From assembly GCF_006345805.1 (NCBI RefSeq), contig NC_043004.1:78616001-78680000 (forward strand): DNA of 64,000 nt, written 5' to 3'. Below the pieces are notes generated by a model, which had not been told where the DNA came from, did not search any database, and saw only the letters and a program-made list of their open reading frames with translations. Position numbers and translations under genes: made by a program. This DNA is from Octopus sinensis (taxonomy: Eukaryota). Below, piece by piece: positions 17,348 to 56,779 of this stretch (position 1 is its first letter; each line of letters starts with the position of its first letter).

Positions 17348-17353
<6 letters not shown>

Positions 17354-27356: not shown

Positions 27357-27404
<48 letters not shown>

Positions 27405-33779: not shown

Positions 33780-33939
33780 GGGTGCACGTGTCTGTGGAGT
33801 ACTCAGCGACTTGCACGTTAATTTCACGAGCAGACTGTTCTGTTGATTGGATCAACTGGAACACTTGTCGTAACCGATGGAGTGCCACCACATGTGACAC
33901 CATTCTAACCTAAAACCATATTATACCACACTGTTTTAA

Positions 33940-34250: not shown

Positions 34251-34749
34251 TAGGTGGATGGATTTGTGTGTGTGCTTGTATGCATTTATATGTGTGAGTG
34301 TATATGTGTTTGTCTCCTTGTCACGTGCTGCTTAAAAGTGTCTCTTGTCATACATACAGTGTCATTCATTTCCAATGTTCTGCAAAAACATGTCTGGTCA
34401 TGGGGAAAAATTCCCTTGCTTGAAAACAAGTGAGGGTTGGTGACAGGAAGAGCATCTGGTTGTAAAAAAAAATTGCCTTGTGAGCACTCGGTATGCTCTG
34501 TAAAGAGGTTAGCATTAGGGAGGAGGGCATCCAGCTGTAGAAACCAGGCCAAAGCAGACTGTGGAGCTTGGTGTAACCCTTGGCCTTGCCAGCACCTGTC
34601 AAGCCATCAACCCATACCAGCATGGAAAAGGGAACAGTAAAATGATAGTTGCAATGATGGTGATGAACCCTTCAACAATCATTCAGTAACTTAAACACAA
34701 TGAAAAGCATTGTTAGTTTTTAAATGTTTGCCCATGATTGAATTTACCT

Positions 34750-34784
<35 letters not shown>

Positions 34785-35318
34785 TACAAAATTATTCATC
34801 AGTTACTAGCTGAAAACAATACAACTGTGTGTATGTGTGTGTGTTGTTCCATCTGGCCTTCAGCGCTTTAACTGAGCCTCATAATAACTTCTATTGTGGA
34901 GGGCTTCCTAATATGTCCCTGATCTTTAAATAGGTTGAATAATAGTGTTTTTTTTAATGCATGTAGGAGGAGGATGATGAGGAAGTCTATAAGCTGTAGC
35001 AGATGTACTACTACTACTACTACTACTTCTACTACAGTCTGTATATCTTTATGAATAATTGTTTCTTTTTATATATTCTATTTGATCTCTTATAAATATG
35101 TTATCAAAGAGATATTATTTTTAAACAGTTAGGAAGTCCCTCGTTATTTCATCAATTACTCATTTTCATCATCACCATCATCATACCATTGCCATTATCA
35201 TCTTTACTGCCTACATTGCAATCATCATCATCACCACCATCATCATCATCACATCTATTTTTCAAACTGTTTTGTGTTAGGCTAGTGATTCTCAACCACA
35301 GCTCCCAGGGACGCCTAC

Positions 35319-35443
35319 AATCCTCAAGCATACTTCCTCGACCCTCAAGCATGCTTCCCTGACCCCCAAGCATTCTTCCTCGACCCTCAAGCATTCTTCT
35401 TCAACCTTCGAGTATGCTCCCTTGACCCTCAATCATCTTCCCT
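35319..35443. repeat. 21-bp minisatellite, about 6 units
   Basis: GACCCTCAAGCATNCTTCCYY repeated head to tail. Confidence 0.85.
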
Positions 35444-37864: not shown

Positions 37865-38054
37865 ATGTCGTTGTCGTTATACAATTCATGTTTGAGGAAC
37901 GACTGATATGGTTTTCTTTGAGTTTGGCTTTTGTGGTGGTTCCTATGGTCTGTATCCAAGTGTTCAGTCTGAAGTGGTTGTTAACTAAGAGGACTATAAA
38001 AATAAGTTGTATTTCTGGTTTCCTTCATTTTATTGGACTTGCTCTTATAAAACG
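37865..38054 (+). CDS. XKR: XK-related protein, first recognisable coding exon (end of TM1 to TM3; internal exon, upstream exon missing)
   Basis: Acceptor tttttcgcttctctttcag|AT (phase 1, G|AT=D) and donor AAA CG|gtaaga (phase 2). Encodes DVVVVIQFMFEERLIWFSLSLAFVVVPMVCIQVFSLKWLL...FLHFIGLALIKR, matching the XK N-terminal pattern (D..V..Y/F....W..L.L......Q.FS..W). Confidence 0.9.
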
Positions 38055-38642
38055 GTAAGATCTTTTTTATCACGTTATTTCTATTTTGGTAAATTTCTAG
38101 AGAATAAGAAAAATCTTATAAAAATGTAAAACTTTATGAAACTGTTGAAGGTACTGGCGTGGTTGTGTAGTCAAGCAACTCCCTTCGAAATCCTGTGCTT
38201 TTAGGTTCAGCCCCACAATGTGACATCTTGGACAATTGTTTTCTAACTATAGCCCCTGTTCAACTAATGCCTTGTTAGTAAATTTGGTCGGTGGAAACTG
38301 TGTGGAAGCGTGTTTTATGTGGGGGTTTGTTCCCCACCCCCAGTGGTTTGGCAAAAAGGGACCAATAAAATATACATCAGATTAAAAAGAAAAAAAATCG
38401 CAAAAGTTAATTTGTGCAACTAAAAACCCTCCAAACCGGTGCCCCAGCATGGCCAGAGTCCAATGACTGAAGCAAAGAGTAAAAAAGTATTTTCCAGAAT
38501 GACTAAAAATAGGGTTCTCTTACAAAGCGAACCCTTGATCCTTTACTATTATTTTGTGCCTTCCTGTTGCCAATCCTCAACTGTTTCCTTATAAGGAAAT
38601 ATTTCCCTTTGGTTCAGAATGTTTTCCTGGAAGACGATAAAC

Positions 38643-38917
38643 CAATGGGTTCTCAACCAGGGTCCGTTTGACCCTTGTGGCTCCATGAAAGATTTTGTTT
38701 TTATAATTTACATGCAATAAATTGGTTATAATTCTGCAAGGCACCAAATAGTTTGACAATTTTCTTTATAAAATTCCTAATAATTATAAAAATATAAAAG
38801 GATTTTTTTAAACATCAAATAGTTGAGAATCCACCTGAATAAAACAGGAATCAAAGAAATCCATAGATAACCACCCCACCCAAAAAAAAGACCAACAAAA
38901 ATGGTTGAAAACCATTG
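38643..38917. mobile_element. hAT-like MITE (degenerate)
   Basis: CAATGGGTTCTCAACC...GGTTGAAAACCATTG termini; the 8-bp flanks match only partly. Similar CAGTGGTTCTTAACC start at about 18265. Confidence 0.5.
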
Positions 38918-40526
38918 CTGTAGACAAACAGCATCACTTGTAGAATGGGGAAACACATAACTATCACATGATCTCATCCACTCTTACAACAGACCATTTC
39001 TGTCGACCGAATTCACTCACAAGGTTTTGTTCAGCCCGGGGCTGTAGCAGAAGACATTTGGCCAACCTACCACACGGTGGGATTGAACCTGAAACCATGT
39101 GGTTGGAAAATAAACTTCTTAATCACATACTGTAATGCCTGTGTTATAGTATTGTGGGAGTATAAACTTATTTGACACAGCAACTTGTTATATCAACATC
39201 ATTGATGCTGATGTTCTTAAAATATCTTCAAATATAAAATTTAGTTCCATAGACTATTAGAGAACCATTGTAGAGGTTTGTATTGATATTTAACTCTCTT
39301 GCTACCAACCTACATGAGACCACCTCCACTGGTTCTATGATATAAACTTCCTGTTTTAAGGTGATCTAAATTTAAACCTTCATCAAAATTTCGTGTTAAT
39401 TTATGCTCCAGATGCTAGTTTAATAATCCTTCCTACTGAAGGCACAAGGCCTGAAATGTGGGTGAGGGGACTAATTGATTACATCAATCCCCAGTACACA
39501 ACCGGTACTTAATTTATTGGCCCTGAAAGGATAAAAGGCAAAGTTGACCTCAGCGGAATTTGAACTTTGAACATAGCAACGGATGAAATACTGCTAAGCA
39601 TTTCGTCCAATGTGCTAACGATTCTGCCAGCTCACTGCTTCCGAATGCTAGTTTAATAATGGCAAAGTCATTATATAAATTCTTCATTATTTAAACAATT
39701 AATTGAAACAAAGGCGATGTAATTTCAAAAGAAATAGGGTGACAAAAAGGTTAAACTGTTGACTATGGCTGAACTTCCAAGCATAAACTTGCAGTTCTTT
39801 TACTTGTTTCACTCATTAAACTGTGGCCATGCTGGGGCAATCAACACCAGTACTTTTTTAAAGCCTGGTACTTATTCTATCGGACTCTTTTGCTGAACCA
39901 CTAAGTTCTGGGGATGTAAACACAACACCGGTTGTCAAGCAGTGGTGGGGGAACAGACACACACACATTTATATATGACAGGCTTCTTTCAGTTTCCGCT
40001 CTTCTAAAGCCATTCATAAGGCTTTGGTTGGCTCGAGGCTATAGTAGAAAACACTTGCCCAAGTTGCCACGCAGCAGGACTGAACCCGGAACCATGTGAT
40101 TGGAAAGCAAACTTCTAACTACAGTCATGCTTAAAATAAACATGGAGGTTTTATTTTTCAGATCTTCCCACTTAGTATTTGTGACATGAATGAAATTCCT
40201 TGATTTAAAATTATGAACAAAAACAACAACAACATCAACAACATAATAGAAAGCTGTAAAATCTGATGTTAAAACATTCATTTAGAATAAGGGACTGTAA
40301 CGTTTTTGAATAAATTATGAAAATCTGTGTAACCAGTTTGCAGGAATGTAAACTTAATGATGGCCAATTACTCTACTTTCTTCTCTTGATGTCTTCCAAA
40401 GCATCAGAAACCAAATATGTTGCTCCACTTTCACATTTTACCCTGAAAGGTTGGACGTAATTTCAAGGAAAATTACATCTATTTAGTTTTATCTGCAGCT
40501 TGTTGAGTGACATCACTCGAGTGGAG

Positions 40527-40573
<47 letters not shown>

Positions 40574-41934
40574 GTATATTTTTGTTGTTGTTGTCATGTG
40601 GTTTGTTATATAACTTTAGTTTTTAGTCTTGTGTTGTTGACTTTCAAATATTTCCTAATGATATTTTATTTTCTTGCTTCCACTTCATTTTGCTGTGAAA
40701 TATTTATTCAGAACATTTTCTGAAAAAAAAAAATCTCTCTGAAATTTTACTGAAGTTCTAAATTGTTTTCTTTGTCTCTCTTTTAATGTTAAGTTTATTT
40801 AGTTCATTTGCTTGATCCATTATTCCTGCTGGTGTTTGAAATAAAGAAAATGGAGAGAGAAGGTGAAATTAAATATCATAATTCAGGACTTAGTATTACT
40901 TAATCACTTTTTAGATTACATGAAAAAGGAAGTTGGATATCTTTAATAAGTTTTTTGTTATGTTATGATATTTCTGTTGAAATGCGGTGCCTTTGTTTTA
41001 ATTAATTTTGAAAATGACAAGGGAGAGTCTATAACCCATTGTAGAACAAATATCACAAGGGACTTCAGTTACAAAGCACTTTTTTTTTTCCAGATTTCTT
41101 GTCTTCTCTTGCTTCAGTCATTTGACTGTGGCCATGCTGGAGCACTGCCTTTAGTCGAACTAATCGACCCCAGGACTTATTCTTTATAAGCCTAGTACTT
41201 GTTCTATCGGTCTCTTTTGCCGAACTGCTAAGTTACGGGGACGTAGACACACCAACATCCGTTGCCAGGTGATGGTGGTGGGGCACAGGCACACAAAAAC
41301 ACACATGTATATACGACAGGCTTCTTTCAATTTCCATCTACCAAATCCACTCACAAGGCTTTGGTCAGCCTTGCCAAAGCTGAGCAGTAGGATTGAATCC
41401 ATAACCTCATTGTTATAAAGAGAACTACTTAACAATATGACCCTAATTTACTAATTTAGCTTCCTACACATGGCTGTGTGGTAAGAAGCTTGTTTCCCAA
41501 CCACATGGTTCCAGGTTCAGTCCCATTGTGTGGCACCTTGGTGTCTTTTACTCTAGCCTTGGGCTCACCAAAGCCTTGTGAGTGGATTTGGTAGATAGAA
41601 ACTGAAAGAAGCCTGTCATATACATACGTACATATATGTGTGTGTATATATATATATATATATATTTGTGTATGTGTCTGTGCTTGCCCCCCCCCACCAT
41701 CACTTGACAACCGATGTTGGTGTGTTTATGTTCCTTTAACTTAACTGTTCCACAAAAGAAACTGATGGAATAAGTACTAGGCTTACAAAAAATAAGTCCT
41801 GGGGTGAATTTGTTCGACTAAAGGTGGTGCTCCAGCATGACTGCAGTCAAATGTCTCCGACAAGTAAATGACTTAATTACTAGTCATCTTCAAATGAAAT
41901 GTGAATTCCAATTTGATCTCCTAACCATTTCCAG

Positions 41935-42125
41935 GTACGCTGATGTATTATTAACCTGGAGTGAATTGAAAACAACCTCTGATCCCCTTCGATTTGAGAA
42001 ATTATTCCAGCAGGTTCACAGTGCTTTTCTGCTTCGACTGTTTCAAACTTTCCTAGAAGCAGCACCACAGTTAATTCTTCAGTCCTATGTGCTTCTAAGC
42101 ACCTGGCATGGATCTGCAGGGACAG
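41935..42125 (+). CDS. XKR: XK-related protein exon with the family signature FLEAAPQLILQ
   Basis: Acceptor catttccag|G TAC completes CG|G=R; donor ACA G|gtgag. Encodes YADVLLTWSELK...LLRLFQTFLEAAPQLILQSYVLL; L..F.TFLEAAPQL.LQ is the XK-domain hallmark. Confidence 0.96.
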
Positions 42126-42464
42126 GTGAGTCTGACTGGAAATATATTTTCAGAAATATTTTCTTCTAATCTGTCTTTAAAAATATTAAAAATCTTGTAA
42201 TCATGTTTTTAACAAATTAACCTATTTGGATACTGAGGACCACTCTATGCAAATATATAATATCAACACTGGGGAATGTATTTTATAATGTTTTGTGGTA
42301 TATTCACACTACTGACTAAAAATATAGCCTTCATTTGTTTCTAGCAGCTCTTGTTTTTGAGATATGATACTTAACCAAGAACCGTGTACTATTGCTATAC
42401 AGAACTGGATTTACTGTTTTTCTTCTCTGAGGAAAATTGTTTTTTAATTAAAAAAATTTTTTTA

Positions 42465-43385
42465 TGTGATGATGTTCATGGCTTGCTGATGAAAGTGGAT
42501 GTATCAAAATATGATGTGCCATGTAAGTGATGGTTTATATGCAACAGCAACAACTATGGATCAATCCCATTTGGTCACTCAACTAAGATGACTGGTCAGC
42601 AGGAAACAAATGCTTTGGTCTTACAGAAGATAGCCATACTACAACCACTACTGTCTAATCTGTGTAGATCTCCAGTGTTAGCAGAGTAGATACACCAAGT
42701 GTTCTTGCTTTATCTGTCCGAGGAGGAGAGCTTGATGAGAAAACAATGGCCTCTGAGAGAAAGCATGGTTATAGGAGAAAAGAATGTAATTTCAGAACAT
42801 TTGTTTGACGGAGATAAGATCATCTTATAATCACTGTATATCAAACTATACTTAATGAAACAGTTTGTGAAGGTTTTGAAGGAAGAAGCAGATTGCTTTG
42901 ATTACAAATGCAGGACATTTTCAGTGCTGAGCATGGAAAGAACTGAAGGCAGGTGTTTTGTAGAAACCACAAATTAGGAAACTCATGAAAGACGTGCATT
43001 TCCAAAATTCAGTGAACAATGTTGAGGCAGATGCAGGGTCTTTGTGCCCCCTGGTTATGAGAGATTTTCTGGGGAATTATAAAGCAAATAATTACTCTGA
43101 CCTGGTTCAGAGCATGCTCTCTTCTTTCCATCAACTTGGCTGTGATATGAGCATCAGACTACATTACACAGCCATTTGGATCGTTTCCTGGACAACTTTG
43201 GTGACCTAAGTGATGAACAGGGTGGACATTTCCACTAAGACTTAAGAACTATGGAAGAAAGGCACTGAGGACATTGCGATACCCATATAATGGTAGACTA
43301 TGGCTGAACCATTTAACAAAATTGTCCTGGGGCAGCTCTCCTCAGGAAGTCTCTGAAACACTGCTTTCAGGAGGAATCTGAATAA
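42465..43385 (+). mobile_element. Decayed DNA-transposon transposase, probably CMC/Chapaev-3-like
   Basis: Frame-shifted pieces CDDVHGLL, NNYGSIPFGHS, ICVDL, LKAGVL*KPQIRKLMKD, FLGNYKANNY..LV..ML..F..LGCDMSIRLH, HLDRFLDNFGDLSDEQG.HFH*DL.TME.R..G..D.H.M.DY. These are co-linear with a widespread invertebrate transposase family. The superfamily name is from memory. Confidence 0.72.
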
Positions 43386-43574
43386 ATGAATATTATATTA
43401 ATGAAGTTTCCTATATTTGTTTTGCTATTATTTGATCCTATGGATGTAATTTATGGAAGATGTACTTGCATAGCAAGTGACCTGATCTCAGATCGTGTGC
43501 TGGAACGAAAACAATTGCAGCATGGAAAGTGTTTATAAGCCATTTAAAAACACACAAAAACCGTTAGATTCACT

Positions 43575-43825
43575 TCAACATTTAAGTGACTTATTTCTTT
43601 ACTACCCACAAGGGGCTAAACACAGAGGAGACAAACAAGAACAGACAGACGGATTTAGTTGATTATATCGACCCCAGTGTGTAACTGGTACTTATTTAAT
43701 CGACCCCGAAAGGATGAAAGGCAAAGCCGACCTCGGCAGAATTTGAACTCAGAACGTAACAGCAGACGAAATACAGCTAAGCATTTCACCCGGCGTGCTA
43801 ACGTTTCTGCCAGCTCGCCGCCTTT
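43575..43825 (-). mobile_element. SINE family B, CpG-rich (young-looking) copy
   Basis: Minus GGCGGCGAGCTGGCAGAAACGTTAGCACGCCGGGTGAAATGC...GAGTTCAAATT...GGCTTTGCCTTTCATCCTTTCGGGGTCGATTAAATAAGTACC. Other copies at about 1580-1780, 6010-6200, 12170-12310, 13770-13965, 19625-20010, 29560-29950, 39435-39640, 48612-49080 and 50350-50565. Confidence 0.88.
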
Positions 43826-44608
43826 GAGACTGATCTGTTCACTGACAAAATTCCATATGCTTAACAATCAGGGCTATAACATATCTTGGTAACTACAGCT
43901 GGTAGAGATAAACTGATGGCATATTTAGAATCAGTGAGTCTGCTGAAATTAATTTACACACATAACATCCAAAGGTACATCTTTTTTCCACTGATGATAT
44001 TAAGCTCATGTCGCATAAATGTAAATTTAATGTTTACTGAGTATTAATAGAAACGGCTGTAAGTGAAGATGACCAATTTGCTGTTAATGATGAACAATTA
44101 TTAACTTCCCAATCTCCAGTTTCTTCTTTTATATGATTATAAACTATATATTTTTATATATACCTATTATTTTAAAGAATCTAAGCTTTTTATATGCAAC
44201 ATATTTTCTGTCTAGGGGACACAACTCGACCTTTTTATCGCCCAAAGGGACAGCTAGGAACATCGTATACACAGAAGTATTCGAGTGAAGAGAAGATATT
44301 GCAACCTACACATGCTCCTTCGTTCCCTAGAGGGAAAGGACTAGATTGGGATTAGTCGTTGCCTACTAGGGGCTCTTACATACACTGGCTATGCTGCTAG
44401 TTTGGTATATTTTTAATTCCATGTTACATGTTTCGTTACAGGATAGAAGATACAAATATAGATATTGAAATGACATGTATAGAATCTCTTACCTGTAATT
44501 CTTTTGACAAAAATTCAAGAACACAACTTCGATATCATAACTCTTGATGTATATTGTGTGTGTGTGTGTTTATAAAAGATTTTAATATACATTTATTTAT
44601 GTTTCCAG

Positions 44609-44818
44609 GTTTTTCTTTAATAATTTCTCTCATATCGTTTTCCTGGGGCTTTGTAACATACTCTGACAATCTCCGACTTCAATCTCGAAATATTCCTCGT
44701 CCAAAATGGCCAAGTTTTCTGCTACAGATTGGTTGGCAGATTGGAATGACATTATCCAGAGTGGCGGCAATTATAATGTTTGCTTTTTGCTTTAAGAGTT
44801 GGATATTTTTCGCTATAG
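44609..44818 (+). CDS. XKR: XK-related protein exon
   Basis: Acceptor gtttccag|GT, donor ATA G|gtaaga, phases 1/1, 210 nt. Encodes GFSLIISLISFSWGFVTYSDNLR...WQIGMTLSRVAAIIMFAFCFKSWIFFAI (S..SLSW..Y and R..A...FA motifs of XK proteins). Confidence 0.95.
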
Positions 44819-45953
44819 GTAAGAATACCACTATTTCTTTGTGTTTATGAAAGCATCACATTCCTGATAATCTTTCTGTATTGTGGAATTTTGTGATGAA
44901 AAACTAATTTCCTATTCACTTCCAAGTTCTTTGATTTCTATGTCACCTGGAAGTCAACGGGAAATAAGTTTCTTGTTACAGAATTCCCTGTTATGGCAAG
45001 TTTTTCAGGAACACAATGTTTCCTTAACGTTTGTATTATGAATCAATTTCTTTCTCCTTTGATATTTTCTTCAAACTTAATTCCTTGTTATATTTGGGTT
45101 ATTTCTGATTTTTTCATCTGAATCTAAAAGTATTTGAATAATTAAGATTTTCTCCACACAATCGGCCTCAAAACTCTTTTGCCTTTTATCAAACTATCTT
45201 CAGAATTCCGTGGGAATATAATACACAAATTTCTTTTAGAAGTTTCTTTGGATCAAAATGTAACTATCATCTGACCATTAGTAAGGAGAGACACACAAAT
45301 AAGAAAGAAGAAAGCAAAGGACCACTGATGAGGTCACAGATATGTGACGAAAGAACTCTGGCCGAAATAAGATTAAGATTAATGTAAAAAAAATAAATAA
45401 CGCTGAAGCAATGTAACACCAAATATATAGTGCGTGTGTTTTTATTGGCTAAACTGGCAAAATGACCATTCCAAAATACAACAATAACTATCATCATTTT
45501 ACGTCAATAACATACTGTTAAATGCACCATTATTTTAATCAAAGGCTGTTTCTTGTGTATGTATTCACTTAATTCAAGCCTGGCCATCTTTCAGACAAAT
45601 CCTGAATGCTATGTTTACTAATTTCTATACCAAAATGAATATCTTTCAGCTGAGCTTTATGACTCATTTTCCTTTCATATTATTGTTCAGTTGTGCAAAC
45701 TCATTTCATTGAACTAAATGAGCTTTGGAAGGGCAACATTACTCCTAATTGTAATATTTCATTACTGAGTCTCTATGATTAGTTTTAGAGAAACTACCCA
45801 GACATAATTAACTTTTGTGAAGCTTTCAGGATAAATAGATTAAAAAAATGCAAGACTCATTTGGAAAAATGGGAAAAAGAATGAGTTTGAGCAGTTAAGA
45901 AATCAGAAGGCTCTATAGATAAGATTGATCGTCACCACAACCACAACAAACAT

Positions 45954-46349
45954 TATTATTTGCATTTGATGGACATTTGTCCTCATCTGGTTTGTTGTTA
46001 ACACGTTTCGGCTGATATACCCTCCAGCTTCATCAGGTTTTCTTGGGGAAGAAATTTCGAACCTGGGTTCTCATTCCTAAGGTATTTTTCAATGTTGTTG
46101 TTATTATTATTCAGGTGACTGCCTAGAATCGAATTCGGAATCCCAAGATTTGGAGTTCAATTCCAGGCAGTGACCTGAATATGAATAATAATAATAAGAA
46201 GAAGAAGAACAACATTGAAAAATACCTTAGCAATGAGAACCCAGGTTCGAAATTTCCCCAAGACACCTGATGAAGGCTGGAGGGTATATCAGCCAAAACG
46301 TGTTAACAACAAACAAGATGAGGACAAATATCCGTCAAATGTAAATAAT
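45954..46349. mobile_element. Two inverted Penelope-like terminal-repeat fragments forming a ~395-bp palindrome, each with a hammerhead-like core
   Basis: 45954-46142 is the near-reverse complement of 46147-46349. CTGATGA-stem-GAAAC occurs on minus at about 46001-46040; CTGATGA-stem-AAAAC occurs on plus at 46263-46303. Confidence 0.75.
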
Positions 46350-46744
46350 GTAAATAGTTCATCTCTTAAATATAGAACTGAACATTATTATTATTGTTTA
46401 ATGACCACTTTTCCATGCATGTGACAGACAAAATGTGTTGAGGCAGATGCCTTTCTTTTGTTGCCAACCAAGGTAATGTTTTTCTCATGGTAAGGTAGTG
46501 AGCTGGCAAAATTGTTGGGCAAAATGTTTACATCTACACATCCACTTCTCTCTTTTTTCTGATGAAGGACCAGCACCTGAAATGTTAAGACACTTCCATT
46601 CTCTTTCCTTTAAAATATTAAGCTAATACTGCATTTTTAAAATCTGTTCTTTCTGTGTTGTCCTTATTGTGATTTATAATATATACGTGTTTTTTCAATC
46701 CTATTTAAAATGTTTGTATACAATCGGATATTCAAAGATATACT

Positions 46745-47229
46745 CTGCAGAAACTGGGTTTTCAAGGTGGTCATTAAGCTCTGCAGTAATTTTGGGAGCT
46801 GTACTTTTGTGATCCTTTCTAACAATTTGCATAAGAGTCTGACAGTCCCTATCTGAAAGTTTTGGTATTCTTCAGGAATTTTGTTTTGACGAGGAGGTTT
46901 TTCCCTTTTTCTCAAAGGCTGTCATTACTTTCGAGACAGTACTTCTTGATACACCAAACATTTCGGCTGTTTTTGTTATGCTAGCGCCTGCCAAAGAAGC
47001 ACCAACAATTTGACCTCTTTGAAAGTCTGATAGATCTGTCATTTTAATGAATTTTAATTACCTTTTTCTGATGATATCTGAAAAGAAACAGAAATTTTAA
47101 CAAAACATTAAGCAACACTAATAATAAATCAAAAACATAAAAATAAACAAGCTTTTTACAGGTTTTATAGATATTTCAAAATTATGATGCTGTGGTGCTA
47201 GGTGTTTCCATTATTTTGTCCAACCCCTG
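46745..47229 (-). mobile_element. Tc1-like element, 5' half: TIR plus paired-like HTH of the transposase
   Basis: TA-flanked TIR CAGGGGTTGGACAAAATAATGGAAACACCTAG at 47199-47229. ATG at 47042 gives MTDLSDFQRGQIVGASLAGASITKTAEMFGVSRSTVSKVMTAFEKKGKTSS..S*RIPKLSDRD..., with one internal stop and no DDE domain or right TIR. Confidence 0.9.
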
Positions 47230-47383
47230 TATATCAGGATATTATTATTTACAATAAAATCAGGCGGCATGGCATGCATAAAAAGCAATTAAGGTAAAAA
47301 GTTAATTAATAATTAACACCTTTATGGTTTTTTATGCATGCTATTCCACTTGATATTATTGTAAACAATAATATCCTTATATA
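47230..47383. mobile_element. 154-bp fold-back at the TA next to the Tc1 TIR
   Basis: GGATATTATTATTTACAATAAAATCAGG..GCATGCATAAAAA versus GGATATTATTGTTTACAATAATATCAAG..GCATGCATAAAAA (reverse complement of the right arm). Confidence 0.8.
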
Positions 47384-47771
47384 TATTTTTATAATTTATT
47401 ATTCACTTCAATCACCTTTTTAAATTTGCTGCGGCATAAAAAAACAGTCATTGCACACATAGTTGAGATGGGCAGTTTCTATGACCCCGGGACAGTAAGA
47501 CACGCTGAGGCTAACTAAGTGACAATTTACACAAAGTTTGAAATTGTGATGGTATGGGTATATCTAGATTTTCAATTTATGATTCTATCCATTATTGGTA
47601 CGAAGGTTTACAATTTCTGCTCATTACCATGATTTCAATTAATGCATATCAATGGAAATTTGTGGCTGTATTCACCTTGTGACTGCTATTTTTAGCATGC
47701 CAGTGCTATTTGTAGCACCCTTAATTATTTATGTGTATATATATATTTTCTCACTGTTTATTTCTGTGTTC

Positions 47772-47807
47772 CTTTCTGCCGAAGAGCATAGGCTCGAAAT
47801 GTAAAAG
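47772..47807 (+). ncRNA. Minimal type-I hammerhead-like motif in a Penelope-type repeat (47750-47930)
   Basis: CUUU-CUGCCGA-A-GAGC(AUAG)GCUC-GAAA-UGUA-AAAG: 4-bp stem I, 4-bp stem II, and a loopless stem III followed by GUA. The core deviates (CUGCCGA, GAAAU), so it may be inactive. Confidence 0.5.
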
Positions 47808-48033
47808 ACTTTCTCACTTCCCGAGCATTAAACTGATACATCTGTTTGTTGTTTACACACCTATCTTCGTCTTTTGTTTTGATTTTTTTTTGTAAATTCC
47901 AACTATATATATACACACACAGATACATACATACGTTTGTGAATATATATCTACCAGTAGAGTTTCTGCACATATTTTAAGCACAATAATTTACTAAAAA
48001 TATTTTTATTCTTCCAAACTTTCTTTTCCATAG

Positions 48034-48318
48034 GAGTTCATTGGATGCTGATGAGTCTATGGATAATTGCTGAGAAACCCAAACTGCGCAGCGTTTGGTG
48101 GCAAGACAAGTTACTTTCCTGTCTGGTTGGATTCATCTACATCTTTTGTTTCTTACATATTCAAAACGGTTCTGGGCGCTGGCGCTTGTTCTTCTTTTAT
48201 GCCCTGCTTTTACTGGAGAATTCTCTTGCAGTTATTGCCTGGTTGTTGACTCCAATTGATATAGCTGAAGCATATCAGTGGCTGTTTACAGCTCTTGTCT
48301 TTACGGGATTTCTCATAG
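48034..48318 (+). CDS. XKR: XK-related protein exon
   Basis: Acceptor ttcttttccatag|GA, donor ATA G|gtgag, 285 nt. Encodes GVHWMLMSLW...GFIYIFCFLHIQNGSGRWRLFFFYALLLLEN (HW..M..W and G.IYIF.F.......R.R..YY.L...EN XK motifs). Confidence 0.95.
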
Positions 48319-50202
48319 GTGAGACACTGGTTATTGTTATTGTTGTTGTTATTATTATTGTTATTACTGTGTAGGTGGCACGTAAAAAACACCATTTGAG
48401 CGTGGCCGTTACCAGTACCGCCTGAGTGTCGGTGGCACGTAAAAGCACCCACTACACTCTTGGAGTGCTGGGCGTTAGGAAGGGCACCCAGCTATAGAAA
48501 CTCTGCCAGATCAGATTGGAGTCTGGTGCAGCCATCTGGTTCGCCAGACCTCAGTCAAATCGTCCAACTCATGCTAGCATGGAAAGCAGGTGTTAAACGA
48601 TGATGATGATAAAGTAGCAAGCTGGCAGAATTGTTGGTGCCCCAGGTAAAATGCTTAGTGGCATTTCATCTGTTTTTATGTTCCGAGTTCAATAACTTTG
48701 TTTTTCTTCCTTTTGAGGTTGATAAAATAAATACCAGTTGAGTGCTGGGATCCATGTAATCAGCTAAGCTCCTCCTGCCAAATCTGCTGGCCTTGTGCCA
48801 AAATTTGGAGTGATTGTTATTAAGGCAGCAAGCTGGCAGAATTGTTAGCACACGAGGTAGTATTTTGTTTGGCTTTTCATTCTGAGTTCAAATTCTGCCA
48901 TGATCAACTTTGTTGTTCGTCCTTTCAGGATTGATAAAATAAGTACCAGTTGAACACTGGGATCAATGTAATCAACTTAACCCTCCCCTAAAATTGCTGG
49001 CCTTGTGCCAAAATTTGAAACCATTATTATTATTATTGTTGTTGTTATTTAGGCAATGAGCTGGTAGAATCTAGAGTATCAGACAAAATGCTCTGTGGTA
49101 TTCCAACCAGTTCTTTACATTCTCTGTTTGAATCCAGTCAAGGTCAACTTAACCAGATGTCCTTTTTGAGTACTAGTCATGTACAGGGGTTGACAGCAGT
49201 GACTATCCCCTTCCCGTTGACACTGTTGAGCCCAGGGTGATAGCTGAAGATGCTTGCCCAAGGTGTTGAACCTGGAACCATGTGGTTGAGAAACAAACTT
49301 CTTTACCACACAGATATACCAGAGTGAATTCTCTCTCCCTTTTGTTATTTTTTTTTTTTTGTAATGCGTCTTGGAAAATTTCATTTTTAAAAAGTGCATC
49401 ACATACAAAATGTTTGGCTATTTCTGAAGCAGTGCTTCCTCATCTGTTCAACAGAATAGAAATTGTCTTAGCCAGCACGGTATAGAATAAGTCTATGAAT
49501 CTCGTTTGGAGAGACATGAATGTTACACTGCTTAAAATACAGGACTTTTTCCTCCTAAAAATTTGTTGCAAACATAAATGAAAAAGGGGCCTTAGGGGCT
49601 GCTATAATGTCTTTGATCCCTAGTCAGCTGAGTGAAGAGTTACCTGGGATTAAACAAATTAAATTCAAGGGATTTCTATAATCCAGTCATTCTAAAACTG
49701 ACTGTGAAAGACTATAACATATTGTTTTAGGCAGAAGTATTTGTCGTATTTTCTCTACAGTAATCAGCAGGCTAACATCATTATTATCTTCATCAAAAGA
49801 TAATTCATTTTTTAAAATTAATGTCAGGTTGGACAAATTATATACACATCATATTTTTCTGTATATTTATGAAAACTTCAAATCTTTAACGGACGATACA
49901 TAACTAATTGTTGAATACATTGTGTTATTTCCAACATCTTTATATATATATATATACAAAAAATCTATCTAATGCTCTTAGCTAGACTTTTTGGTGGGCA
50001 ACCAAACTGAACAGTAACTGCCTGAAACTGTAAGGACGTCTGGTAACTTGACTGATGAAAGAAGGCCACAAATGACCTATCCCTCTAATAGTTGTTTTTC
50101 CTGTCTGCCTTTGTATCATCTATCTGTCCGGATGTTTTATTGTCCTCTATTGCGTTTTTGTTCCATTATATATATAATTTTACTTTTTATTTTTTGCTGT
50201 AG

Positions 50203-50315
50203 GAGTGGTCTGTTTGCTCTTGTTTTATTGCTGCTACCATCCTGACCAAAAGAATTCCACAGAAGATTGTACATCAACAGAAGATAAAACTATAGCCAGA
50301 ATAGAAAGAGCCAAG
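50203..50315 (+). CDS. XKR: XK-related protein exon: last TM helix and start of cytoplasmic tail
   Basis: Acceptor tttttgctgtag|GA, donor GCC AAG|gtaaca (phase 0). Encodes GVVCLLLFYCCYHPDQKNSTEDCTSTEDKTIARIERAK; G....L.YY..YHP closes the XK domain. Confidence 0.93.
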
Positions 50316-51384
50316 GTAACAAATGAATTTTGAAAATACATTTTGCTTTCCAAGGCAGTGAGCTGGCAGAATCGTTAGCATGCTGGGTAAAATGCTTAGC
50401 AGCATTTCATCCGTTGATATGTTCTGAGTTCAAATTCCGCTGAGGTTGACTTTGCCTTTCATCCTTTCAGGTTTGATGAAATAAGTACCAGATGAGTGCT
50501 GGGGTCAATGTAATTGACTCTCTCCCTCAAAATTACTGGCCTTGTGCTAAGATTTGAAATCAAATGTATGTTTTCTTCCTCTTTTGTTTAAAAGGTGCTG
50601 CAGTGTAGTGGCTCTTGCTCCCATTTTCTGAGAATCTCATTTATTTCACTCTGCAAGAATTCACCTGTGATATTACATTTGACCAGATATTTTGTCAATT
50701 AGTTTGAGCTTAACAAACCAAGTTAAAGAAATACTCAACAATCCAATTAGGAAGACCCCTATGTAGTTGCATGATCTGCTAGAAATAGCAGACAAATTCT
50801 TCTCAAATCAAATTCGGCCTAAAAAACAAAACATTGGCTGTTGCTGTCAGAGACTGTGCCATGAAGAAAAAAAAAAAGATTGGACAGTCAAGGCTTTTAT
50901 GACGCATTGAAAGTTCTCCAGGTTTTCAACCTTTGAAGCTGATAGAGAATATTTCTTTTCACTGAGAAAAGGTATCAATTTAATCTTTTGGACACCAAAC
51001 TGCCTGAGACCTACCCACACCTGTGGCCACCTCACTCCTGGTTTTACGATATAATCCTCCAGTTTTAAAGTGATCTAAATTAAAATTTCCCACTAAAATT
51101 TCATGTTATCTTCCAAACCTTAGCTTAATAGCGACAATGGTATTTTTACTATATTCTTCGTTAGGTGTCAGGTGATGCCTGTGAGGTTGCTTTGGCTTTT
51201 CCAATGCCTTATCCTCGCCATTGCTCGTGGTAATGCTGGCTTGCTTCAATAGGTTCCGTTAAACCTTGTGGTGTGCAAACAGTTGCTATGATAAAAAATT
51301 CTCCACAAACTGTTTCAATACAGTTTTAACAGAAAGATTTGGAAGAATTAGATGAAAGTTCTCCGCTTATTTTCTTCCATGTAA

Positions 51385-51730
51385 GCACAGGAGTGGCTGT
51401 GTGGTAAGTAGCTTGCTTACCAACCACATGGTTCCAGGTTCAGTCCCACTGCATGGCACCTTGGGCATGTGTCTTCTACTATAGCCTTGGGCCAATGAAA
51501 GCCTTGTGAGTGGATTTGGTAGACGGAAACTGAAAGAAGCCTATTGTATATGTGTGTGTGTGTCTGTATTTGTCCTCCCCACCATCGCTTGACAACCAAT
51601 GCTGGTGTGTTTACATCCCTGTAACTTAGCGGTTCAGCAAAAGAGACTGATAGAATAAGTACTAGGGTTACAAAAAATAAGTCCTGGGGTCAATTTATTC
51701 GACTAAAGGCAGTGCTCCAGCATGGCCGTC
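51385..51730 (+). mobile_element. tRNA-headed SINE family A (representative full copy)
   Basis: Box A-like GTGGCTGTGTGGT and box B-like GGTTCAGTCCC head, internal (TG)n, and tail ...GAATAAGTACTAGG...GTGCTCCAGCATGGCC. Other copies or fragments at about 470-830, 3360-3760, 8050-8180, 9290-9480, 20995-21180, 22290-22650(-), 38140-38480, 39800-40130(-), 41111-41370(-), 41466-41860, 57575-57900(-) and 63590-63850(-). Confidence 0.88.
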
Positions 51731-52000
51731 GGCTTTGCTTTTTGTCCTTTCAGGATTGATAAAACAAGTGTCAGGTGAGCACTTTGCTTGATATAATCAA
51801 AAGCCAGCATTTGAAACAAATATTTTCAAACAATTGAAATAATGTGTATTTCTACAGAAATATGGTAACAAAAAGATTAACACAAGTCTTATCTGTGAGA
51901 GAACTTAACGAGTTACCATCACAAAAGTTAATTAACAAGTATTTTATTAGTTTCTATTGAAATTGTGTCTATATTCATATTTGTTTATTTCTCATTACAG

Positions 52001-55000
52001 CCTTCATCATCATCACTCACATCCAATCGCTCGTTAATGAACAAACATATAATTGACAGCAGCATCCGACATACTTCGAGTGTGTATCCTTGTCGAGAAG
52101 ATCCAATTGGTTGCTATTCCAAGATGAGTGATAACATACACTTTTTCTCCCGCACTGATAGCAGTCCCAGTATTTCTGGTAGCGTGTCCCCCGCTGTCAA
52201 CCAGGGTGCATTATTTGATGACTCCACATACCCTGAAAGAGCTAACGAACCTACCACAAATAAAATATTTACCTCGTCTGTTATTGAAGAAGAGGTTACT
52301 CCTTACAGTTCAAAATCTATCAAAAGGAAAATAAAGCACGGTTCTTTGACTGTGGATAGATATAAAAGGAAGGAAGATGCAGAAAATGGTTCGCTGAGGC
52401 GCCAACTGAAATGTAATAAATCTGGCGATTTCAAAGATGGCATATCAAAGGCAAAGTTGATGAGTGCTCCATCTGATATGCAAGTCCACCCCAATTATTA
52501 CCCTCAAATATCTCAGATGCCAAACGTAACAGTTTCACCGGTGTACCATTTAACAAAAGGGAGACGTCCTCTAGCAAGACATCATAGTGAAAATGTCAAA
52601 TCCTCCTCCGTTTCGACATTGGATAATCTTTCTGATCAATACCATAACTGGCAGGAATCTAGGGAAGGATCTGACCGTTATCTTGAAATGCTCGAAAAAT
52701 ATCGTGACCCTGGCAATAAACCAGCCAAGTACACCTATTTGAATAGCGTTTACCAACCAACTACGAAACCAATGGAATGTAAAACCAAGGAAGGTCCCTT
52801 AACACGATTACGGTCTTCCTTTCGCCGTCATTTGAATGCTATAAAGACTCCCACTTACAAAGAAATGTCCCCAGTTCTAAATCCAAGTCAGTATTGTACA
52901 AACCAAGAGACTCTAGATTCCAAATCAGGTTCCTTTCAGCAAGGTCATCCCTGGCCAAATTATGAAATACGTCATTATCCAAGGGACCATGCTGGGAGAT
53001 TCTATGACATGCGTAGCCCAAGAGTACATGGCTCCAATTCAGAAGAATTTACCTACCAAAGTTACCTTCAAAGACCTCCATGTCATCAAGTCTATAACGA
53101 GCCAGCTCATTGCCTAAATCGTCAACAGTGTTACAATCCAGTGACTAATTGTAACAATTACTGTTCTCACAAGAGAATGTCCTATGCTGAAAACTGTTCC
53201 CACAGTAATTTGATGGAGAATGCAGCATCGTACCAAATACGTAAAGCTACAAGTCTTGAAAATCTAAACACTTTAAATGACAATCAGGCTTTGAGGAATT
53301 TCTCCACTGCAGATCCTTACAGCTGTAAACAAGTGCCTAATCATGCCGCGTATCGTACATTACCATACAGACCAAACCATTATATTAGTCAGTATCCTTG
53401 CTCTTCAGCTTTTTCTCCTTGCCATGATGGTGTTGTTTATGACAAAGCTAATGTCCGCCCTGAATATAACTGCAAGCAACAACAACCCTCCGATGCTCAT
53501 ACATATGTTGTGTACAGTGACAAACCCTCTGCTAATAGATGTGTGTCAGCACCACCAAATCCATCAGCCAATTACGGATCCTTACGAGGCCGAACCGTAC
53601 TCTCCAGGCAAAATAACCCAAAAGAACCAATTGTCGATCATGACTTTAGGTATTGTACTATTTCTTCAAGACGTTCTGAAAGTGCTCCACCAAATGAAAA
53701 TCTCTTCAGAGCAAGTTTCAAAAATCTTAGAAAAATTCCACCCAGGTCAACCACTTATGGTTCTAATAATGCTACTGAGACAGATTGCTATGACTTCCGG
53801 CAGCTGACCATATCACCAGTGCAGTCCATGTCGGTGCCACCAGATAAAGTAACCAGTATAGAAGCTTTAAGGAATCTCACAGTGTCTCCTGTAAGATCGG
53901 TTTCTGTGATTCCAAATCAATCTCCCAAAGAGCAAGAATGTTACTCTCAATATGGTGAGTCCTCAAACAGACCAACATCAGTTCCACCTGATTACACTTT
54001 CCATGGTAAAACGCAGAACTACCCACAAGGTACTGAGATTTCAGGGATGCCAGGTATAGACTGTAATTATAATAAAGGACAAAGATCAATAACTGCCGCT
54101 CAATCAATTGCTAATGACCGTTGTTTATCACATGGACAATTTACTGTTTATTCTGATTTCAATCTCTCCATTCCACCAGATTCTCAAACAATAAAATCTG
54201 TTGCAGAAATTTGCCCGTCTTACAGGATGGCACCGGCACTTCCTAGTGTCCCACCTAACAGTAATCAGTCTCCGTTGTTCAGCTGTAAGCATCCGTATCT
54301 TCCAGAACGGTCTCTTTCGGTTCCATTTAACTCCTCCCACTCAACTGACACAGATACGGATACAACCTCTGTCACTTCACTTTCCAGTTTCCCAGATTCG
54401 GTTAGTGATGCTCGATCGGCCGAAGATAAAGCAGCCAAACATTTGGAAGCGTTGGACAATTGTTTGAATTCTGAAACAAATAATTTAGAGTCAGAAATGG
54501 AATCGTTGAAGAGTCAATCAACATCCGATGAAGTTGATTCTTCACACGAGCCGACTGAGGTTGATGCTACAAAATCTCAAACAACAAATGAGGAAGACAG
54601 TCCTCAAAACCTGACCAAATTAAAAAAAATGTCCTCACACATTCATTCTGGAATTGCAATTAGTCCAATTTCTCCAGAAATCAAAGAAAATATGACAAAG
54701 AACCAAGAAATTATCAATGAACAGAGAACAGCTGCAGGTACATCTTTTGGTAGGATTCCTAAGGAGGTATGCAAGACCGAAGTGACACAAGAGAAGAAAT
54801 ATAATGGAAACGAATTCAATTCCAACAGTTTTCACGAAAATCACGATGAAACTGATGCAAAAATATTCCAAGAGTTTAAGAAACCTGATTCTGATGATTC
54901 TTATTCACATAATACTATTGTATCCAAAACACTGAATCATAACCAAGACCCTATTAGCTATTCCCAAAATTCTTTGTGTGAATCTGATATTGAAGAACAG

Positions 55001-56779
55001 CCTAGAAGACCACAAGTTCCTAAAGATCTCCCTAAAGAGAAAATAAAACCTGAAGAACTACATAAGGCTTTCCGTTTAAGTCCTTTAACAATTCAACAGT
55101 TGAAGAATTCTCCTCTGAAGCTGGGTCGATCTCAATCAATAAGCATTATGGATAAAAACCGTTTATCAAAATTAAAAGACAAACTAAGCCCACTTCGTAT
55201 TCAAACTTTAGTTAATTCTCCGTTCAAATTTGGACGCAGCATTGATCTTTTTGATCGGAAAAAGTGGCGTAGTGCAAACGATATACTGGATGAGGTGAAA
55301 AGTGAAACACCTGTTTGTAATTTGGTGAAGGTGAAATATTTAGAAGATAAAAACACAGAAAACGTTAAGGATATTCAAGAAGGGAAAAATTCTGCGAAAG
55401 AAGTTCAAAATGAAACCTCGTTAACTGATAGAAAAACAACAGCAAATCTATCAAGTAATTATCTCACGGATAATGAGGTTAATTCTTCAAATTTTGGAAC
55501 TATAGATGATCGTGACTGGGCTCTTGATGTACTGGACCATTTGTCTAGAATATCTGACCACCATACTACCAGTTTCAGTGGGAGCAGCCATGCCTTCTCT
55601 GAAAAATCCAGACAGAGAAATATTACCAAAGATCTTGTACAAGATGGTTCGTCGATGGCAAGTTTGCAGAAAAGGTCTCAAGTCAGTTGTGACCAAATTC
55701 CATTAATTAATCAGAATAACTGTAATGAAGATGTAAATGAATTAATTAGAAAAGATGTTGATGGCAATAATATTGATAACAGTCAAAACACTCTGCGACA
55801 ATCAGAAGGATTTGAGAGTCAAAGCAGTTCTCGGTGTGAGATATCTGGTACCTGTAATGGCAGATTACAACCAAATATTGATTGGAAATGTAATAACGAA
55901 CAGGAGAAAATGGGGCTTGAAGAGAAAGGAATTACTTCAAGAGTTTGTCAGAAAGAGGACTTGGTATTCGAGAAACTTTCACATCTCAAAGATCCGATTG
56001 TTTTGGAGCCTTTAGCTACAGAGAGAAAGGAATGTTCTAGAGAAAGTATTAATATGAATAATAAGTCTGAAAAACATTGTACAGATCAGAGAATATATGG
56101 TGCTGGAGACGATAATTCTTCAAAACTGTCATTGACAGGTAAATACCAGAAAAAACTCGCTAATGTTTATGCTGACGCCAAACCTTCTTACGTTGGAGAT
56201 TTTATTTCTGAAGAAGATATCAAGAACTGGCAAGTGTCAGTCCAGTTAAAAGGGTTAGAATTTGCTGAGAATAATAGCAATGCAAATGATTTTGATAAAT
56301 TAAATAATTCCTTGTTTAGAGAGAAATTGGCAAGAGAAACTAATTATTTATGGGGAAGTCCATTTGATAAATTTAAACCAAATTTCTCAATGGATGATAT
56401 AAGTTATGGCATCAGAAAATTTCCTCTGAGAACCCAGAGTTTTCAGTCAAGATTCCCCAGAACTGTATCCCGACCAGTTGACCCTCAAGTGATGCCAACC
56501 ATCTTTGAGAATAAAATAATGACAGAGCAATTTATATATGATGATGCAATTTCTGACATGTATCTTTACAAAGAACCACAATCACACCATCCACCCTGTT
56601 ATGCATATGATGACCAGAGATATACCAACCCTAAACATCCGTTATACATTTATGATCGGTCACTTGCTTACATGGACAGTGTCCACCCAGATGGTTACAT
56701 GACCATTCCAAGTAAGAAACCTGCTAATTCTTGGAATTTAAAAAAAAAGAAAAAATTATTTTCCAAAAATCCAAAATAA
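52001..56779 (+). CDS. XKR: XK-related protein, giant terminal exon (1592 aa Ser/Pro/Asn-rich, probably disordered tail)
   Basis: Acceptor tttgtttatttctcattacag|CCT is in phase 0 and in frame with the previous exon. The 4779-nt open frame contains no SINEs or microsatellites, unlike all flanking DNA, and ends TAA at 56777-56779. Confidence 0.88.
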   Translation, partial: PSSSSLTSNRSLMNKHIIDSSIRHTSSVYPCREDPIGCYSKMSDNIHFFSRTDSSPSISGSVSPAVNQGALFDDSTYPERANEPTTNKIFTSSVIEEEVTPYSSKSIKRKIKHGSLTVDRYKRKEDAENGSLRRQLKCNKSGDFKDGISKAKLMSAPSDMQVHPNYYPQISQMPNVTVSPVYHLTKGRRPLARHHSENVKSSSVSTLDNLSDQYHNWQESREGSDRYLEMLEKYRDPGNKPAKYTYLNSVYQPTTKPMECKTKEGPLTRLRSSFRRHLNAIKTPTYKEMSPVLNPSQYCTNQETLDSKSGSFQQGHPWPNYEIRHYPRDHAGRFYDMRSPRVHGSNSEEFTYQSYLQRPPCHQVYNEPAHCLNRQQCYNPVTNCNNYCSHKRMSYAENCSHSNLMENAASYQIRKATSLENLNTLNDNQALRNFSTADPYSCKQVPNHAAYRTLPYRPNHYISQYPCSSAFSPCHDGVVYDKANVRPEYNCKQQQPSDAHTYVVYSDKPSANRCVSAPPNPSANYGSLRGRTVLSRQNNPKEPIVDHDFRYCTISSRRSESAPPNENLFRASFKNLRKIPPRSTTYGSNNATETDCYDFRQLTISPVQSMSVPPDKVTSIEALRNLTVSPVRSVSVIPNQSPKEQECYSQYGESSNRPTSVPPDYTFHGKTQNYPQGTEISGMPGIDCNYNKGQRSITAAQSIANDRCLSHGQFTVYSDFNLSIPPDSQTIKSVAEICPSYRMAPALPSVPPNSNQSPLFSCKHPYLPERSLSVPFNSSHSTDTDTDTTSVTSLSSFPDSVSDARSAEDKAAKHLEALDNCLNSETNNLESEMESLKSQSTSDEVDSSHEPTEVDATKSQTTNEEDSPQNLTKLKKMSSHIHSGIAISPISPEIKENMTKNQEIINEQRTAAGTSFGRIPKEVCKTEVTQEKKYNGNEFNSNSFHENHDETDAKIFQEFKKPDSDDSYSHNTIVSKTLNHNQDPISYSQNSLCESDIEEQPRRPQVPKDLPKEKIKPEELHKAFRLSPLTIQQLKNSPLKLGRSQSISIMDKNRLSKLKDKLSPLRIQTLVNSPFKFGRSIDLFDRKKWRSANDILDEVKSETPVCNLVKVKYLEDKNTENVKDIQEGKNSAKEVQNETSLTDRKTTANLSSNYLTDNEVNSSNFGTIDDRDWALDVLDHLSRISDHHTTSFSGSSHAFSEKSRQRNITKDLVQDGSSMASLQKRSQVSCDQIPLINQNNCNEDVNELIRKDVDGNNIDNSQNTLRQSEGFESQSSSRCEISGTCNGRLQPNIDWKCNNEQEKMGLEEKGITSRVCQKEDLVFEKLSHLKDPIVLEPLATERKECSRESINMNNKSEKHCTDQRIYGAGDDNSSKLSLTGKYQKKLANVYADAKPSYVGDFISEEDIKNWQVSVQLKGLEFAENNSNANDFDKLNNSLFREKLARETNYLWGSPFDKFKPNFSMDDISYGIRKFPLRTQSFQSRFPRTVSRPVDPQVMPTIFENKIMTEQFIYDDAISDMYLYKEPQSHHPPCYAYDDQRYTNPKHPLYIYDRSLAYMDSVHPDGYMTIPSKKPANSWNLKKKKKLFSKNPK

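Follow-up and report, generated by a model that had tools for sequence, protein, structure and literature searches.

Dying cells, and neurites destined for pruning, display phosphatidylserine through the action of XKR scramblases, and to our knowledge the members studied so far all possess short tails. A stretch of 64,000 nucleotides of the Octopus sinensis genome (contig NC_043004.1 of assembly GCF_006345805.1, positions 78,616,001 to 78,680,000 of the forward strand; referred to here as the window) raises a tractable question about this family, namely what a tail of 1,600 residues contributes to a putative lipid scramblase of 335 residues, and which of the 12 conserved islands in that tail matter. 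The window matched CM016866.1:78,616,001-78,680,000 of GCA_006345805.1 base for base, and its positions 37865-56779 represent coding exons 2-7 of the gene LOC118764597. Judged by its sequence, the product is a member of the XKR family, and the tail and the XKR domain belong to one gene and one protein, of which the tail is a conserved part. Comparison with relatives suggests that a huge, conserved and disordered tail is the usual form of an invertebrate XKR, the largest tails being found in cephalopods.

According to a preliminary description of this locus, five exons of the membrane domain splice in phase into a single terminal exon of 4779 nt. This was borne out by AG and GT boundaries, by the spliced transcript of a relative and by the joined product, which comprises 1,921 complete codons and one split codon with a sole stop at 56777-56779 and matches XP_036361400.1 of RefSeq (LOC118764597 isoform X1, annotated as "uncharacterized protein") over its residues 30-1950 with 100% identity. 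The full protein has 1,950 aa, with an N-terminal XKR membrane domain of about 335 aa followed by a cytoplasmic tail of about 1,615 aa, and the last 1,592 tail residues are all encoded by the single 4.8-kb exon. The stop-free run around this exon extends over 1,615 codons; the runner-up among the six frames of the 64-kb window has 181 codons. The structure described earlier holds at its given coordinates and goes far beyond what chance would produce. Exon 1 (29 aa, MSTGRDFHSQDVAIVVLSAIIYLLDVAT) was located 2.46 kb upstream of window position 1, and for this reason positions 1-37864 were assigned to intron 1. The O. bimaculoides ortholog has an intron 1 of 28 kb, colinear with window positions 4-37864. 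Ortholog models of 1,887-1,962 aa exist in three further octopods, namely O. bimaculoides (XP_014775197.1, with the same exon plan seen in the DNA), O. vulgaris (CAI9727358.1, automatically named "XK-related protein 6") and Argonauta hians. What we see here is an ordinary protein-coding gene with a correct annotation and no new kind of system; for several species, RefSeq and UniProt already contain it together with its exact exon structure.

The joined exons matched the Pfam profile XK-related (PF09815) with 235.2 bits (gathering cutoff 24.8; E 1.3e-69) over the first 329 residues of the window product, as the family assignment in the preliminary description had led us to expect. The window exons cover profile positions 18-337 of 337, and the first 17 positions come from exon 1. 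Among solved structures, human XKR4 was the best match (9boj_B, 4e-35), followed by XKR9 (7p14_A, 7e-16, query residues 1-312) and XKR8 (7dce_X, 1e-12). An affinity to XKR4/6/7 is suggested by these matches to XKR4, XKR9 and XKR8 and by the automatic name "XK-related protein 6" given to the orthologs of O. vulgaris, Biomphalaria and Holothuria. Alanine scanning of Xkr4 revealed that D123, D127, T307, E310 and S311 are needed for scrambling (PMC10495444). The octopus segment D25-V-A-T-D29 aligns to D123-V-G-T-D127 of mouse Xkr4, and T130-F-L-E133-A aligns to T307-F-L-E310-S311, four of the five residues being kept. Since the acidic residues of transmembrane helices 1 and 3 (TM1 and TM3) that are required in Xkr4 are among those kept, the octopus membrane domain would be expected to scramble phospholipids as XKR4 does.

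Comparison with the known members showed both likenesses and differences. Human XKR4 (9BOJ) shares with the octopus protein the PF09815 fold family as well as the DxxxD of TM1 and the TFLE residues of TM3 (PMC10495444), but its N-terminus is much extended and about 85 aa are inserted behind TM2, whereas the octopus protein has 24 residues before TM1 and no insert. Its cytoplasmic C-terminal tail has been described as longer than those of XKR8 and XKR9, dynamic and regulatory (PMC12334663), yet with about 130 aa it is short beside the 1,615 aa of the octopus tail. XKR8 (7DCE) and XKR9 (7P14), which are apoptotic scramblases activated by caspases, are likewise members of this Pfam family, and their alignments span the entire membrane domain, but they show much weaker similarity (1e-12 to 7e-16), have tails of tens of residues and carry a membrane-adjacent caspase site that is not conserved in the octopus.

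RefSeq isoform X2 (XP_036361401.1) begins at an internal Met in exon 2 (window 37865-37890), the start codon being Met36, and its first 36 residues are missing. It is thus without D25 and D29, the counterparts of the scrambling-essential D123 and D127 of Xkr4, and if real it may be inactive or regulatory. A look-up of its exact sequence among assembled contigs gave no match. Reading through the donor of exon 6 (window 50316-50333) leads to a TGA after five codons (...ERAK-VTNEF, then stop), so that intron retention or early polyadenylation would give a short-tailed XKR of about 363 aa, with a size near that of XKR8 and XKR9.

The tail itself gave no match in Pfam (E<=1) or among Protein Data Bank (PDB) sequences (E<=10) and contains no TM-like or hydrophobic segment. 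It has 66% disorder-promoting residues, 13% serine and a mean hydropathy of -0.95. AlphaFold2 (AF2), run on a 4-sequence alignment, gave a mean predicted local distance difference test (pLDDT) of 29 and 35 for two overlapping halves and displayed a single confident helix at tail residues ~801-838. The tail is therefore predicted to be almost wholly disordered, in line with the large disordered domain expected earlier. It evolves under purifying selection, for which the preliminary description had argued: in comparison with O. bimaculoides, dN was 0.038 and dS 0.152, resulting in a dN/dS of 0.25, with values of 0.13-0.21 in the proximal half and 0.3-0.6 in the distal half. Nucleotide identity to O. 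bimaculoides was 90-97% in the exon and 87% in intron 6 and the 3' flank. No frameshift or stop was found in the tail among five cephalopod sequences. Across four cephalopods, 30% of the tail positions and 56% of those in the membrane domain are invariant, and the invariant tail positions cluster in 12 islands with fast-evolving spacer between them.

The terminal exon was also said to be free of stops and repeats, and so it is: Tandem Repeats Finder revealed no array inside 52001-56779, and in a self-comparison of the window, repeats covered 0% of the exon bases and 32% of the non-exonic sequence, mostly as SINE-like families. SINE-like copies are indeed abundant around the exon, but the claim that the surroundings are riddled with microsatellites was overstated, as Tandem Repeats Finder detected only five arrays in 37-64 kb. 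An origin of the open reading frame (ORF) from a transposon or a pseudogene was rejected in view of the dN/dS, the conservation and the absence of repeat similarity. As a separate observation, the last 181 codons (window 56234-56776) showed a dS of 0.039 against O. bimaculoides, with a nucleotide identity of 97%, while the other seven 200-codon blocks ranged from 0.11 to 0.21; this suggests that the RNA or the DNA itself is constrained, for example as a regulatory element or as a substrate of editing.

To place the octopus protein among its relatives, the membrane domain was searched exhaustively with HMMER against 1.84 billion cluster representatives, and 60 proteins were obtained at E<=1e-30. 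The sequence after the XKR domain has at least 500 aa in 35 of the 60, at least 800 aa in 20 and at least 1,000 aa in eight. Long-tailed relatives were found among gastropods (Haliotis asinina, XP_067679346.1, 1,326 aa; Nucella lapillus, KAL8598585.1, 1,695 aa; Gigantopelta, Patella and Biomphalaria), bivalves (Sinanodonta woodiana, KAL3868628.1, 1,623 aa; Pecten, 1,541 aa; Mactra antiquata, KAL4236359.1, 1,675 aa; Mytilus), crustaceans (Palaemon, XP_068230219.1; Oratosquilla), insects, echinoderms (Lytechinus, XP_041484029.1), a hemichordate and amphioxus (Branchiostoma, XP_019633244.1), all of them labelled "uncharacterized" or "XK-related protein (6)". These uncharacterized predictions are the nearest relatives of the octopus membrane domain (33-38% identity) and share its layout, with the XKR domain at residues ~30-340 followed by 550-1,360 aa of sequence rich in serine and threonine. 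In Haliotis asinina, residues 352-1326 are encoded by one exon of 2.9 kb, and in Sinanodonta woodiana residues 355-1623 by one of 3.8 kb; in both, as in the octopus, exon 1 has 29 aa. The plan with a giant terminal exon is thus at least mollusc-wide and, together with the small XKR domain before it, ancestral in molluscs, and a tail of about 500-1,400 aa is, by this comparison of sequences, the usual state in invertebrate bilaterian relatives. Cephalopod tails, with about 1,530-1,810 aa, are the longest.

Because long tails and a giant terminal exon (Haliotis, Sinanodonta) occur in relatives, and long tails were seen in 35 of the 60 nearest representatives including molluscs, arthropods, echinoderms and amphioxus, the octopus gene cannot be called lineage-specific, as had been proposed. 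Nor is it an undescribed system, given that its model has been public since the O. bimaculoides genome (XP_014775197.1). Equally long tails that are common and already described had been named as grounds against the proposal, and these largely apply, since tails of at least 500 aa proved usual in the relatives; however, a full-text literature search turned up no publication that deals with invertebrate XKRs of the long-tailed kind, with XKRs of cephalopods or with a motif of the GRSIDLF type. The octopus protein is an uncharacterized member of a known family with a tail typical of invertebrate orthologs. What remains distinctive, as far as the comparisons indicate, is that the cephalopod tail is the longest and that its sequence is almost entirely cephalopod-specific.

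The architecture appears from these alignments to be shared and ancient, with a tail content that is fast-evolving and clade-specific. Unlike the layout, the tails of the other invertebrates are unalignable with the cephalopod tail beyond the motif SPx[KR][FL]GR[SN][IV]DLF, and each clade displays conserved motifs of its own. A profile-profile comparison of tails between phyla (cephalopods, two mollusc groups, arthropods, invertebrate deuterostomes and vertebrates) revealed only the cephalopod-mollusc motif as significant. Arthropod tails carry the strongly conserved motifs HDYENICAVNIAREAWGLRSW...DIE and PRRKFSLLRERFE, and [RK]RSLxRIPxNxVAxKVxxF forms the end of the tail in echinoderms, a hemichordate and amphioxus; both are unalignable with mollusc tails. 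For Mytilus relatives, several Logan/ENA contigs of 4.0-5.7 kb hold tail-only ORFs of about 985 aa, which suggests a single giant tail exon there too.

Within the cephalopod tail, short linear elements stand out (Table 1). The longest island (residues 577-656) is predicted by AF2 to form helices at both ends (tail residues 209-233 and 266-280), with a pLDDT below 50. The motif S[AVI][PI]P[ND] was observed seven times against 0.03 expected, and a variant eighth copy, RSLSVPF, follows this array at residues 1128-1134. RxxSxP was found six times in the whole tail against 0.72 expected, and none of 2,000 shuffles reached either count. Five of the seven S[AVI][PI]P[ND] copies lie in or adjoin islands that are invariant in the four cephalopods, and five of the six RxxSxP sites lie in such an island or at its edge. 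The mode-1 consensus for binding of 14-3-3 is R[SFYW]x[pS]xP, that is, the RSxpSxP type, and two of the RxxSxP sites, RSESAP and RSLSVP, fit it by sequence.

The second copy of a duplicated unit in the island at residues 1384-1453, SPFKFGRSIDLFDRKKW, is the sole tail element common to cephalopods, gastropods and bivalves. A hidden Markov model (HMM) of cephalopod tails recovered only this SPxKFGRSIDLF region in Haliotis (4e-9), Patella (9e-8), Pecten (2e-5) and Gigantopelta (3e-5; independent E-values of hmmsearch), and hhalign of cephalopod against other mollusc tails gave a probability of 94% with an E-value of 1.2e-7. The regular expression of the motif matched in six non-cephalopod molluscs. 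By eye, the mollusc-wide GRSIDLFDRKKW (window 55220-55260) and IKIDLFRNRYPAW of XKR4 share IDLF, basic residues and a tryptophan. The helix predicted at residues 1525-1549 showed the second-highest AF2 confidence of the distal tail segment, with a 10-residue block mean of about 52.

Other candidate features of the tail were tried and rejected. Caspase-type DxxD sites are neither enriched (9 against 6.1 expected) nor conserved, as only one of the nine, DLFD at residues 1440-1443, is the same in all four cephalopod sequences; this one is 1,100 residues away from the membrane, and most other molluscs have not kept its P1 aspartate. EB1-binding SxIP motifs were not enriched either (1 against 2.2 expected).

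Table 1. Exons of LOC118764597 in the window and conserved elements of the encoded tail (residues numbered on the full protein).
Feature	Window positions	Strand	Remarks
Intron 1, distal part	1..37864	+	no exon 1 inside the window (tblastn and six-frame regular-expression search)
Coding exon 2 (VVVVIQFMFEERL...ALIKR)	37865..38054	+	AG acceptor, GT donor; completes the D29 codon; end of TM1 and TM2; part of the Pfam XK-related match; identical to RefSeq XP_036361400.1
Coding exon 3 (YADVLL...SAGTG)	41935..42125	+	AG/GT; TM3 motif TFLEAAPQL with E133, aligned to TFLESAPQL of XKR4
Coding exon 4 (FSLIISL...FFAIG)	44609..44818	+	AG/GT; inside the Pfam XK-related match
Coding exon 5 (VHWMLMSL...GFLIG)	48034..48318	+	AG/GT; inside the Pfam XK-related match
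Coding exon 6 (VVCLLLFYCCYHPDQ...IERAK)	50203..50315	+	AG/GT; last TM helix and start of the cytoplasmic tail
Giant terminal coding exon, whole distal tail	52001..56779	+	4,779 nt; polypyrimidine tract and AG acceptor; 1,592 codons and stop
Longest island, residues 577-656 (ESREGSDRYLEMLEKY...YKEMSPVLNPSQY)	52655..52894	+	invariant block in four cephalopods
Seven S[AVI][PI]P[ND] motifs, residues 874-1111	53546..54259	+	four with R at -3
Island, residues 1384-1453	55076..55285	+	duplicated SP-x-K-[LF]-G-R-S unit; second copy SPFKFGRSIDLFDRKKW
Island, residues 1525-1549 (DRDWALDVLDHLSRISDHH)	55499..55573	+	predicted helix; invariant in four cephalopods
C-terminal island, residues 1841-1873 (SRFPRTVSRPVDPQVMPTIFENKIMTEQFIYDD)	56447..56545	+	invariant in four cephalopods; within the low-dS stretch

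In our opinion, LOC118764597 is with high probability an XKR4-like gene whose conserved, apparently disordered tail would act as a phospho-regulated regulatory and scaffold arm. By analogy to characterized members, the membrane domain would scramble lipids and the tail would regulate or position it, as a regulatory and scaffolding arm built from short linear motifs. Kinases of the basophilic or proline-directed type could phosphorylate the RxxSxP and SxPP[D/N] clusters and the many S-P sites, and phospho-binding adaptors, 14-3-3 for example, might then recognize them; this would gate or localize scrambling in analogy to the plug of XKR8. The mollusc-wide GRSIDLF...W element would be the best candidate for docking onto the membrane domain or for binding a conserved partner. 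Phospho-regulation appears as the most economical reading because basophilic-kinase, 14-3-3-type and S-P sites are enriched, and phosphorylation of the C-terminal tail is reported to activate XKR8.

Several points weigh against phospho-regulation of an XKR4-like scramblase by this tail. The assignment of the motifs to 14-3-3 and kinases is one of consensus resemblance, and the array of SxPP[D/N] and RxxSxP is absent from the non-cephalopod relatives. The 50315->52001 junction in O. sinensis is supported by the RefSeq model, the logic of the sequence and the transcript of a relative. S311 of Xkr4 is an alanine in the octopus, and the AF2 prediction of disorder, in view of its small alignment, is supportive and not decisive. 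No canonical caspase DxxD near the membrane domain is conserved in the four cephalopods, so that the best-known route of XKR activation has no visible counterpart. Finally, a profile comparison of the GRSIDLF motif with the C-terminal helix of XKR4 (E ~0.8) lent no support to homology.

Other explanations have to be considered both for the join of tail and membrane domain and for the function of the tail. We find it hardly conceivable that the 4.8-kb ORF constitutes a gene of its own or belongs to a transcript other than that of an XKR, having been stitched to the XKR exons in gene prediction through a chance fit of phase. It is true that tail-only ORFs, on contigs of about 5.6 kb, make up most of the relevant Logan cluster and that in-frame Met codons occur near the start of the 4.8-kb ORF. 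However, the contig of run SRR8281677 in this cluster, from a more distant cephalopod, is intronless over 6,588 bp and encodes a continuous protein of 2,148 aa in which the XKR domain is followed by the tail. The contig of run ERR12921338, with the tail ORF only, is 99.85% identical to it starting at its position 218, and just before this position it displays a T-rich tract ending in AG that the SRR8281677 contig does not have. A polypyrimidine tract and AG exactly where the similarity starts form the signature of an intron-exon boundary, as expected from genomic DNA compared with spliced mRNA, and in terms of the protein this boundary coincides with octopus position 52001; in this second cephalopod the membrane domain is 63% and the tail 40% identical to the octopus protein. 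Moreover, the join is present in models from four octopods, the same domain order recurs in more than 30 other invertebrate proteins, and Haliotis and Sinanodonta have an exon boundary at the equal protein position. We also judge it very unlikely that most of the tail has no function and is expanded low-complexity sequence, tolerated since it is disordered. Such sequence would fit with tails that are unalignable across phyla and even across mollusc classes, one motif excepted, and with the rise of dN/dS in the distal half, but not with the overall dN/dS, the intact reading frame in five cephalopod sequences or an exon without the repeats that cover 32% of its surroundings. In addition, 30% of the tail positions are invariant between octopods and the cephalopod with a tail that is only 40% identical, and a long tail is retained in nearly every sampled invertebrate lineage.

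It is unlikely, in our estimate, that the tail mainly serves as an autoinhibitory plug which is cleaved off by proteolysis, as happens in XKR8 and XKR9 and, in cells, in XKR4, with its length being incidental. The C-terminal helix of XKR8 and XKR9 plugs the C1 cavity, and helix 600-622 of XKR4 has been modelled to occlude the cavity likewise (PMC12334663); the way in which XKR tails exert control is itself disputed, since cell-based and reconstitution results for XKR4 conflict (PMC12334663). The resemblance by eye of the mollusc-wide "IDLF + basic + W" to IKIDLFRNRYPAW and the invariance of DLFD, the only such DxxD in the four cephalopods, would agree with a plug. On the other hand, the P1 aspartate of DLFD is mostly lost in other molluscs, no DxxD is conserved from the last TM helix to the first island, and this check of the four cephalopods revealed nothing in the octopus tail that would correspond to the caspase site of XKR4. 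The vertebrate C-terminal block (...I[KR]ID[LM][FP]R[KN][KR]YPAW...YE[ST][ST][LV]) compared with cephalopod and mollusc tails was not significant (hhalign E 0.84-0.87), and the conserved vertebrate C-terminus IKIDLFRNRYPAW...YETTL has no significant octopus match. Twelve separate islands across 1,600 residues also exceed the needs of a plug. A tail that is mainly a tether or scaffold, anchoring the protein for instance to a bridge-like lipid-transfer protein, the cytoskeleton or the endocytic machinery, and not a means of catalytic control, would be rather improbable as the whole explanation. Its precedent is XK (XKR1), which works in complex with VPS13A (PMC9436381); this family member depends on a large partner in the cytosol instead of caspase cleavage (PMC9436381, PMC12334663). 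In XK, unlike the octopus protein, the large partner is a separate protein and there is no giant tail. Scaffolds typically have long disordered tails in which many short motifs are conserved, and the one confident helix of the tail is amphipathic; yet no known partner-binding motif was identified in the tail and no VPS13-binding element in the octopus protein. As to XK and VPS13A, their interface is reported to be formed by a cytosolic loop within the membrane domain rather than by a tail, which likewise speaks against a tether. A tether and a regulatory arm may also both be true.

Beyond the phospho-regulated arm proposed for the octopus, a wider reading is conceivable, though we hold it with considerable doubt: long-tailed XKRs might constitute an ancient, unrecognized subfamily of XKR4/6/7-like proteins in invertebrate bilaterians, with a single-exon, phospho-regulated hub arm of 0.5-1.8 kilo-residues that was shortened in vertebrates. 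GRSIDLF...W would then serve as the plug or partner site, to which cephalopods would have added a multivalent RxxSxP and SxPP[D/N] array. If this were true, the tail regulation of XKR8, XKR9 and XKR4 would be the remnant of a much larger signalling module.

The SINE-like sequences around the gene fall into at least two families. One of about 380 bp is present at window positions 3354-3747, 41471-41856 and 51388-51727, and one of about 320 bp at 5071-5388, 15608-15925, 21545-21869, 28100-28416, 32024-32412 and 59374-59663. At least two such families also recur in the O. bimaculoides ortholog, and several copies yield ORFs with "...LDALPNTNHS...". On the opposite strand, the 3' part of a neighboring gene occupies window positions 59200-64000 (minus); according to contig gene calls, its product has 525 aa and a BSD domain (PF03909).

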